From Macrostomum lignano (Eukaryota): a stretch of DNA of 64,000 bases. The position numbers and the translations under genes are program-made. Positions 21,585 through 24,500 of this stretch are shown piece after piece; within the stretch, counting starts at the first letter, position 1; each line of letters starts with the position of its first letter. The stretch spans positions 62,001 to 126,000 of the forward strand of contig NIVC01000110.1 in NCBI GenBank assembly GCA_002269645.1, written 5' to 3'. The notes under the pieces were generated by a model. That model was not told the origin of the DNA, made no database searches, and worked only from the letters and a program-made list of their open reading frames with translations.

Positions 21585-24500
21585 TTGCTGCAGTGGTTGG
21601 CCGGAACGTCACTCCAGCTGGCTGGGCTTCGCTTGGCGGTCGACTGGACGCGCTGCTACTTCGACGGCCTGCATTACTGCCGCCGTTGGCGCCGCTCCCA
21701 GCAGCGGCGCAGTTCACCAACAGCACGGGTCCGGGGGCGCAGCGTTCTGCTCCGGTTGTCATGGCAACCAGCTGCAACGATACTCGACCACCAGCCGGCA
21801 AATCGTCGACGCGAAATCGAAGCTGATTGGCCGGAATAGGCTGGCCGTAGGGCCGACCGTCGCGCAATATTTGATAGCCCTGTCGGTTGGTGGTTTTTTG
21901 TGCTACTTATAGTAGACTTTGCGGGCATAATAATTATAATAATAAATGATTACTGCTTTATTGGCCAGATGTGCAACCGACAGCTTAGCCGCAGCTATGC
22001 GCATCTGAAGGCTGCGTACGGCTGCTCCGTACAAGCACTAGGTGGGGGGGGGTTGCCATACACGCACCCTCAATTACCTACGCTCTTAACCACTAGGCTA
22101 GAACCCCTGAAGGCGTGATTTAATGTTTAAATCGGTTTAATTCGTAAATATTTAAAAGATCGAACTGTCTAAGTCTCAATCAGACTAGCTATTTACCTAA
22201 AGCGCTGTGTGAATTCTGCAGTTTGAGGGGGGGTATTTTTGATGTCACAAGCTCCAAGTGTTAGCACCCCTTGGTACTAGCGAGCTCATGATATTCTCTT
22301 CGAAAACTCCTAATTGAGGTGGCGCCTCTGAAACTGACGTTCAGACGTTCGATCCCCTCCCAATGAAAAGTTCAGGCCACGCGCTCTTGGTGCACGTACG
22401 AGCCTAAAAATGAATTTAATTTGAATGCGGTATCGAGTGAACGATACTCGAGGATGAATTACCGGAAGAGGTATCCCGGAAGAGGTACCCCGATCAAATT
22501 GTTGGTTTCTAAAAGCAACAGAATTGCAAAGATTCAAAATCAATAAAATATCATTTACGTTCAAGCTTGTATAGTTGAAAGAAATCAATCAAAACAAAAC
22601 AAAAGAAACCAAAAGTTTGCCAGGAAAAGTTTGCGCTGCTAATCCACTAGTGACTATCGAACAGCTTCCGGTCAAACATGAGCATAACGCCAATCAGCAT
22701 CGCTTTCATATCTGTGCTCATCATCTCCCCCACTTGCAGGGTGTACACTGGGCCTTTTTCATCGATTTCGACCGCTGTGATGAGGCGGCGCGTGATGCTG
22801 GCGACCTCCTCGGACTCGTCGGGTAGCAGCACCCGGAAGCGGTGCCGTTTGCAGCTGGCCTGGCAGTACTTCGGCATGCGTACGAGGATACGGGCGGTGC
22901 CGTGAATGTCTTTGATGGTGAACCGCAGGCTGCATAGAACTCGTTCAACGCTCACGTAGCCAATGACCTCTGTTGGTGGCGACTCGACCGTTACAGCCCA
23001 GTGCTGGTCGCAGGTCAGCTTCACAACAGTCTGCTTGCTGCTGATGTCCGAGATGAACAGATTGAAGCCCTGGTTGGTGGAGCCGCCGCAGCACCCGGTG
23101 GATCGTCGTTGAACCATGGCTCGCAAGAATGGCAGCCCGGCGTCACCCGTCACCTCGTACTCGCAGTAAGCTACCGGGTGCACCTCCGCGTGGGTAACAA
23201 AGGCGAACCTGTCCAGGTAAGGCTTGCTGCCGCACTGACCCGCCACCTCGCTGCAGGTGTCATCCTCGTCATAGACGTCTTCCTCTTCCTCCTCGTCAAG
23301 GAATCGAGTTGTTGCATTTGGAGCGGCTGATTGGTTTAAAAACTCGTCCAGTTTCGCGTCGTCATTGGTTCGGTCGGAGAGCTGAGCAGTACCGAGTGGC
23401 ATGTTTCCTGTGTCCGCGTGACTCACGCGTACGAACTAAGACTTCTCATTTGCGGACACAGTTGAGAATGGAGCTTTGTTTGAGCTGGCCAAAAGCTGAG
23501 CAATTTAACAACATGCTTTTGCTTGGATTAACCAGAGGAACTGCAGAAATGCACGACACATCGTTTTAACATCAATTTTCGAGTCTATGGCAATCAAAGC
23601 CTTTGAAAGTTTTTCTAGTTCCTCAATGAAAGCTTTATTTGTAACTGTGAAAATTTCATATTTATGAAACTGTGAATATTCAAGTCGAATTTAAATTAAA
23701 TTTAGATGAGCATCCAGAGCCAATGAGAAGTAGAGCTGGGATCAGACGTGACGTCGTGTACGTCAGCCAATCAGATTTCAGGAATGATCAAGACAGGCGT
23801 GGGGTGGGATGTTCATATGGGGATAGAGAGGATGACGTCATATCCCTCAGCCAATCATAATTCAGGAGGGGTGTTAAGCTAAAAATGCAACGCAAGACTC
23901 ACGGAGATGCCGGACTCCGGTGTCAGCGGATCCCAGGCCACGGTCAGACCGTCAGAGTCCAGGGCCTCCAGTTTGAGCTCGGGACTCTGCGTGACTGAAG
24001 CGCCCGTGACGCGCAGAGGCGGCTGACTGAGCTCGCTCTCGCAGAGGCAAGTCACCGTGTCAGATTGCGGATCCACCTGTGCAAAATCGTTGATTTATTG
24101 ATCGTTTCCAATATATGGAATTCGACAGTTAAATCTCTCTTACCTCGTCGCTACCAGCGATAGCCTTGACCTGAACTTCGCAAGCCAGACCTGGCTGCAG
24201 ATCCGATAGGTAATAAAAATAGTTTCCACGACTTGGCGACGCCTTCAAATCGCCGTGCCACTGACCGTCGACGTAGACGCTGTTGAATTGGTAAAGGAGA
24301 GGACTTGGGGTTAGTTAAAGACATTAATTAGTATCCGTTCATTCAGGAAGACGCACTTAGCTTAGAATTAGAACGCTAAGGTGCCTATTTAGTTTTTTTA
24401 AAATCCATTTGTGACAGATTTAATTTAGGCTACTCAGAGAAGTAGAGTAATAGAGATTTTAATCGTAAAATTTCACACATAGCCCGAGAAGTGTCGCTAT

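Follow-up and report, generated by a model that had tools for sequence, protein, structure and literature searches.

We analyzed a 64,000-nucleotide stretch of the genome of the free-living flatworm Macrostomum lignano (contig NIVC01000110.1 of assembly GCA_002269645.1, Mlig_3_7; hereafter the window, whose numbering, lower by 62,000 than that of the contig, is used throughout) in which a gene for a phospholipid scramblase (PLSCR)-like protein, the guest, lies inside an intron of another gene, the host, on the same strand. The intron splits a fibronectin type III (FN3) domain of the host. The guest coding sequence (23402-22647) falls wholly within this intron (23902-21880), and the annotated host product skips it. 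We consider it probable that this is an ordinary host and nested gene pair, and that the guest is an independent functional gene with its own promoter. The two genes are already separate GenBank entries, and their arrangement is a well-known and ordinary form of genome organization.

The host coding sequence rebuilt from the window comprises 19 exons on the minus strand (39917..19220), totaling 5,763 nt and encoding 1920 amino acids (aa). The rebuild combined open segments and GT-AG sites with conservation across copies and domain logic, and it had to satisfy two lengths, 1920 aa for the window copy and 869 aa for a frameshifted copy of the locus (L004). Its product is identical at every residue to PAA90408.1 (BOX15_Mlig016419g1), a protein annotated on contig NIVC01000110.1. 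The exons and the features bearing on the nested arrangement are as follows.

39917-39689, 39525-39449, 39356-38932, 37787-37740, 37659-37570, minus strand: host exons 1-5, exact match to PAA90408.1
36953-36788, 35513-35105, 34232-34072, 33986-32925, 30827-30609, minus strand: host exons 6-10, exact match to PAA90408.1
30063-29770, 29541-29265, 28625-28173, 26346-25836, 25329-24667, minus strand: host exons 11-15, exact match to PAA90408.1
24279-24144, 24076-23903, 21879-21585, 19293-19220, minus strand: host exons 16-19, exact match to PAA90408.1
23903..24076, minus strand: host exon 17, FN3 strands A-B and the B-C loop, ending in phase 0
21880..23902, minus strand: host intron 17, 2,023 bp, gtgagt...cag, enclosing the whole guest gene
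22647..23402, minus strand: guest coding sequence, 251 aa plus a TAG stop, own ATG, single exon, Mlig012151 cluster
21585..21879, minus strand: host exon 18, FN3 strands C-G (GYQILRDG...LQLVAMTTG...) and a Ser/Ala-rich tail, ending in phase 1
19220..19293, minus strand: last coding exon of the host, protein end …NLNAFVDLFAKICDRLLTSVLTGQ*

Because the match extends across all 1920 residues, every host junction is fixed at the protein level, including the one joining 23903 to 21879. The coding sequence up to this point measures 5,394 nt, which places the junction at codon 1798, in phase 0. The original prediction, made from the letters of the DNA, had proposed these two exons with their coordinates and splice sites, the phase-0 junction and the 2,023-bp intron between them, and it was right on each. 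Exon 17 has canonical splice sites (gcacag/GTGGAT...ATCTCC/gtgagt, slashes marking exon boundaries), as does exon 18 (accgacag/GGCTAT...CAGCAA/gtgagt). In the GenBank record, which is 100% identical to the window over 33402..12647, the 1920-aa host gene runs from beyond window position 33402 to 19220, with the 251-aa scramblase gene inside it on the same strand. Since the annotation is derived from transcripts, the public host model uses exactly the junction between 23903 and 21879, and its 1920-aa product contains zero scramblase residues. The peptide spanning the junction, PESGIS/GYQILRDG, is shared with a paralogous copy of the host protein, PAA51752.1, and occurs again in two 219-aa UniProt models that stem from an older assembly and a separate annotation effort.

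Several details of the host 3' end deserve mention. The acceptor in use at 21879 has the tract aaaaaaccaccaaccgacag, which is A/C-rich and poor in pyrimidines. In-frame AGs at 21840 and 21822, 39 and 57 nt past it, are possible alternative acceptors, and use of either would remove FN3 strand C. The older 219-aa models end in …THPYG(N/Y)QLINLGGAINWS and not in …NLNAFVDLF…TGQ; their terminal exon maps to window position ~19060, within an open segment at 19194-19006 (minus strand) about 230 nt past the annotated stop, and may be a genuine alternative 3' exon or an error of the older prediction. Another chain that also gives 1920 aa, with 27512-27288 and without 30827-30609, had no exact protein match, and 27512-27288 is a false exon. 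Word-indexed homology searches with the joined exons 17 and 18 and with a 228-aa host open reading frame (ORF) returned no matches, which reflects a limit of the tool and not absence: the same searches missed A0A1I8FLB3, a protein model with 43 residues identical to the query, so this null result is uninformative.

The two exons flanking the guest form a single FN3 domain, as had been proposed. Neither exon 17 alone nor exon 18 alone has any Pfam match. Joined, they give an fn3 match of 16.3 bits (E=0.011), under the cut-off; over the full-length host the score is 50.5 bits, with the cut-off at 25. The invariant Trp, Tyr, Gly and Ala recur in the joined segment and in four other FN3-like host repeats aligned with it. 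AlphaFold models the segment as a seven-strand sandwich in which the junction (residues 44/45) lies within strand 43-50, that is, strand C. Foldseek found 72 matches to this segment in the PDB at E<=1e-3, with FN3 domains on top at template modeling (TM) scores of 0.6-0.7; the best come from LAR, neogenin, fibronectin and tenascin. The adjacent FN3 domain is interrupted by another intron (24666-24280), which falls a few residues further along the same beta strand.

The FN3 repeats occupy the C-terminal half of the host protein. The N-terminal half is made up of about five repeats of ~100 aa, encoded by exons 2-9 (39525-32925), with the pattern V-R-x-x-D-x-G-F-x-P-x-x-x-x-V-x-x-G-D-x-V-x-W … G-x-Y-x-F. 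Pfam detected nothing over these repeats, which we take to resemble cupredoxin-like modules. Across the junction of 32925 with 30827 (window 32990-30609), the sequence presumably resembles a motif of the chitobiase/hexosaminidase C-terminal type. The copies of the locus differ by 0-1 positions per 100 bp over 30800-30500. Given this conservation and the chitobiase-type resemblance, we took exon 30827-30609 to be real.

The guest ORF corresponds to M. lignano BOX15_Mlig012151g2, to which it is 100% identical save for one extra Glu. It had been described as a complete 251-aa ORF of the PLSCR family on the host strand, and this description stands: the protein matches the Pfam Scramblase family (PF03803) with 37.6 bits against a cut-off of 25.4 (E=1.9e-9), and it is annotated as a gene of its own. 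In the AlphaFold model, residues 1-59 are acidic and disordered, and residues 60-247 form a core with a predicted local distance difference test (pLDDT) score of 80-95, predicted as a 12-strand barrel with a C-terminal helix at 230-242. The best Foldseek matches are At5g01750 (1zxu) and TULP1, and the top of the list holds 1zxu, 2fim and 3c5n. The predicted fold is thus the Tubby-like barrel expected for the PLSCR family.

The guest resembles canonical PLSCR proteins in its above-threshold family match, in the predicted barrel around a C-terminal hydrophobic helix, and in its nearest relatives, which are M. lignano proteins that bear the name phospholipid scramblase. That helix is retained and aligns with the family segment K-A-V-L-L-G-x-x-F-L-I-D-F. 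It differs from them in that the profile match is confined to its C-terminal half (residues 132-249 on profile positions 94-220 of 221), with identities of 20-33%, in lacking about 12 residues of the N-terminal barrel region in the alignment, and in carrying an extra acidic, disordered N-terminus of ~60 aa. An exhaustive HMMER search of 1.84 billion representatives gave ten matches at E<=1e-3, and beyond the copies of its own locus the nearest relatives of the guest are other M. lignano scramblases, at 29-33% identity. In alignment with these relatives, the Cys-rich palmitoylation motif (CCCPCC-like) is absent from the guest, which has a 16-column gap where they show C-x-C-C-S-C-C. The EF-hand-like Ca2+ motif (D-[AS]-D-x-F-x-[IL]-x-F-P) is absent as well: the relatives have T-D-A-D-x-F-x-L-x-V-P, and the guest has DEKGPVY in place of the D-A-D-x-F of the Ca2+-binding motif. 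Judged by alignment and model, the guest is a divergent, lineage-restricted protein of PLSCR/Tubby fold with neither the palmitoylation stretch nor the canonical Ca2+ motif. We note that a canonical paralog, Mlig026026, has a convergently oriented phosphatidylserine decarboxylase gene 4-5 kb away in all three of its copies (L003:6001-6690 with 11196-12690; L007 and L008 alike), so that two phospholipid-related genes are neighbors there.

The locus is present in four copies (the window, L001, L002 and L004) with an identical nested layout, and in all four the guest ORF is intact and annotated as a separate gene of the Mlig012151 cluster. Between the window and L004, the guest ORF carries 1 nonsynonymous and 6-7 synonymous changes and one in-frame codon indel, a ratio of nonsynonymous to synonymous divergence (pN/pS) of about 0.04 (P about 2e-4 under neutrality). 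The intron sequence flanking the guest differs between the same two copies by 2-4% upstream and about 10% downstream. The synonymous excess marks the guest as a functional gene and not debris, and by this comparison of copies the ORF is under purifying selection. It thereby offers a natural example of a PLSCR-fold protein that is still selected despite the loss of both motifs, the one for palmitoylation and the one for Ca2+ binding.

The copies also carry traces of their own history. In L004 the host gene has a 1-nt frameshift at ~1100-1130 (equivalent to window ~32990, in exon 33986-32925), after which the reading frame ends in …RAEDAGNR*. The annotated L004 host product is only 869 aa long, and the guest ORF there is intact; this host copy is either a pseudogenized paralog or an assembly error. 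Across window 27600-21100 the copies are 98.5-100% identical, against 90-96% in the flanking parts, and all 30 amino-acid differences between PAA90408.1 and PAA51752.1 precede residue 1288. The high identity of the 3' third and the clustering of these differences suggest a recent gene conversion or mosaic duplication history.

How might the guest be expressed? The Mlig_3_7 annotation was built on RNA evidence only (StringTie, a de novo transcriptome, spliced-leader (SL) reads and poly(A) reads), and transcriptional units clustered at 95% carry a common name prefix (PMC5730564). The prefixes of host (Mlig016419) and guest (Mlig012151) differ, from which we infer that the guest was assembled as a transcript apart from the host. 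The gN suffix of the locus tags does not give an operon position, a reading we rejected; it is a copy index within the 95% cluster. Within intron 17, the following elements bear on guest expression.

23749..23867, minus strand: promoter-like module of two 35-nt direct repeats, 347-465 nt 5' of the guest ATG, putative in function
23720..23724, minus strand: third inverted CCAAT box (ATTGG)
23541..23546, minus strand: CTGCAG, candidate SL acceptor fitting [T/C]TNCAG, 138 nt upstream of the guest ATG
22415..22420, minus strand: ATTAAA, candidate poly(A)-signal-like hexamer, the first one, 227 nt past the guest stop

The repeats of the module (23867-23833 and 23783-23749) are 83% alike, and in each the inverted CCAAT box TGATTGGCTGA stands before a (TG)ACGTCA cyclic AMP response element (CRE)-like site. 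This duplicated CCAAT and CRE-like module suggests that the guest has its own promoter. Under our preferred reading, the host polymerase would transcribe through intron 17 and the transcript would then be cis-spliced from 23903 to 21879. Guest transcription would be driven by the module, situated within the initial ~180 nt of the intron, and would end at a poly(A) site at most a few hundred nt past the stop. Host polymerases would probably read past that site, which to them is intronic and lies downstream of a strong 5' splice site. Suppression of intronic polyadenylation that depends on U1 is known in other systems and may operate here. The original prediction had held that the layout forces host transcripts through the promoter and poly(A) site of the guest and had suggested interference between the two genes; such transcriptional interference is possible in principle.

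Several observations weigh against an independently promoted guest. The case for its transcription apart from the host rests on public annotation and on a naming scheme. Allowing 1 mismatch, TGATTGGCTGA is found 3 times against 1.96 expected, so the module is not statistically exceptional, and the sparing of its core motifs by the 8 differences between the window and L004 in this stretch is not significant (estimated P about 0.2). After the guest stop there is no canonical AATAAA before 21962, the sole earlier signal being the ATTAAA at 22420. The candidate SL acceptor listed above is a further point on this side, as is the preference of an ab initio splice model, in which coding potential is rewarded, for splicing most of the ORF (23381-22734) in frame into the host.

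The main alternative is that the guest lacks a promoter and that its mRNA is cut from the host pre-mRNA by SL trans-splicing (for example at 23540) together with cleavage and polyadenylation, in which case a given host primary transcript would become host mRNA or scramblase mRNA but not the two together. SL trans-splicing acts on about 30% of M. lignano genes, at acceptors with the motif [T/C]TNCAG (PMC8629364). Because the species uses this process, the guest could realistically be expressed from host pre-mRNA, an option that mammals lack. The CTGCAG at 23546-23541 lies on the host strand, and in stand-alone paralogs of the guest a match to this motif precedes the ATG by 48-75 nt, and no other ATG occurs in the leader. 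A leader starting at 23540, however, would hold two upstream ATGs, between the CTGCAG and the guest start codon, and a short out-of-frame ORF would open in it at the ATG with which the SL ends. The CCAAT and CRE-like elements sit a short way 5' of the candidate acceptor. Host and guest also belong to different transcriptional-unit clusters, and, judging from the methods text of the annotation, units cut from one precursor at SL sites should share a prefix. On balance we regard this alternative as unlikely. Slightly less probable still is its more specific form, in which intron 17 serves as a one-gene 'operon slot' where cis-splicing and trans-splicing exclude each other and trans-splicing is followed by intronic polyadenylation.

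Far less plausible is a fusion exon, whereby most of the scramblase ORF (23381-22734) would be cis-spliced in frame into the host as a 216-aa cassette and the separate gene would be a by-product of annotation. The sites exist: gctcag/CTC at 23381 and CAA/gtgggg at 22734 are both in phase 0 and compatible with 23903 and with 21879 or 21840, and Viterbi splice models choose this path. An in-frame AG and an in-frame GT are, however, each expected by chance with a probability of 1/3. Ab initio Viterbi and length-constrained models reward the coding potential of the guest and so cannot separate a nested gene from a fusion exon; we used them solely to enumerate sites. An old WormBase ParaSite model, A0A1I8FLB3 (683 aa, ML2 assembly), strings host and scramblase pieces together, but it hops between frames on a noisy assembly and misses the true junction peptide, and we reject it as a fusion protein: it is a mis-prediction that jumps from frame to frame through parts of host exons and of the scramblase ORF. 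The chain without the ORF matches the annotated host product exactly, whereas a fusion chain would be about 2121-2136 aa long and not 1920. The guest ORF has its own ATG, its own stop and a complete predicted fold with the C-terminal helix, which the fusion would truncate at residue 223. At the level of annotation, then, the scramblase is not spliced into the host mRNA.

Equally improbable is a recent retrocopy or decaying pseudogene inserted in the intron, an origin that had been suggested when the nested pair was first described. The single-exon coding sequence inside an intron is what would recommend it. Yet no poly(A) remnant was found, the intron having no A-run >=8, and in place of a convincing target-site duplication the sole flanking repeat is a 13/15 AT-rich match (23701-23687 / 22426-22412). 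There is no close parent either: the HMMER search of 1.84 billion representatives returned nothing above 33% identity besides the copies of the locus itself. The un-nested paralogs Mlig026026 and Mlig009655 likewise have coding sequences in one exon, of 690 nt (229 aa) and 687 nt (228 aa), so the lack of introns in the guest is uninformative about its origin. With an ORF intact in four copies and constrained as described above, decay is not what the sequence suggests, and on these grounds a recent retrocopy is excluded. An ancient retroposition is possible. The arrival of the guest would be an old event, whose DNA-level or RNA-level mechanism appears to be no longer readable.

That the scramblase gene is an artefact, an intron-retention signal combined with a chance ORF, is the least credible alternative: annotation pipelines can call ORFs within retained introns, but the match above the curated Pfam cut-off, the confidently predicted Tubby-like fold and the strong synonymous excess refute it.

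Elsewhere in the window, self-BLAST of intron 17 revealed no second copy and no transposon-like repeat, and ARAGORN does not class a tRNA-like stretch at about 22120-22060 as a tRNA. Leaving aside the guest-bearing intron and the one that follows it, the last two of the host, introns of more than 500 bp in this gene (38910-25398) consist mostly of micro- and minisatellite arrays, among them a 12-bp unit x162 at 30851-32800, (CTGT)125 at 27629-28126, an 11-bp unit x90 at 35791-36787 and (CTAA)168 at 38240-38910. Several of these arrays are open in all three frames over hundreds of codons and therefore mislead ORF-based exon finding. The neighboring features are the following.

11213-12832, plus strand: 539-aa single-exon ORF of a voltage-gated K+ channel gene (domains BTB_2 (T1) and Ion_trans), located downstream of the host
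40000-42000: AT-rich stretch (31% GC) between the host start and the SPFH gene
42594-43271, plus strand: Band 7/SPFH-domain exon, on the opposite strand, upstream of the host
48993-50054, plus strand: 353-aa ORF of a mariner-like transposase, Mos1-type helix-turn-helix domains with an incomplete DDE domain, element probably truncated
57728-58462 and 58743-60152, minus strand: protein-kinase-domain exons, beyond the SPFH exon

A search of the literature for either locus tag or for Macrostomum together with scramblase returned nothing relevant. The value of the result lies mainly in curation, as the host (PAA90408.1) and Mlig012151 models are correctly separated and the older, fused A0A1I8FLB3 is wrong. 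Beyond this, the pair is a handy test case, in a flatworm capable of transgenesis, of whether a same-strand intronic gene is expressed from its own promoter or by trans-splicing.

How does the pair compare with known systems? It resembles the SL operons of M. lignano (PMC8629364) in that two same-strand genes fall within a single span of primary transcription and an acceptor-like [T/C]TNCAG lies 5' of the downstream ORF. It differs from them in that the guest sits in an intron and not past the poly(A) site of the first gene, in that it has promoter-like elements of its own, and in that the acceptor here is a candidate by motif match. Same-orientation nested genes are known from Drosophila and C. 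elegans. The claim that nested genes are usually antisense was overstated: the genome-wide survey of mouse and human nested pairs finds only a slight bias to opposite orientation (PMC11694760), and same-strand nesting is not rare. Unlike the mammalian pairs, the one described here belongs to a flatworm with SL trans-splicing and is known from sequence and annotation. With the same-orientation nested pairs of metazoans (PMC11694760) it shares a complete gene within one intron, separate annotations and normal removal of the intron.

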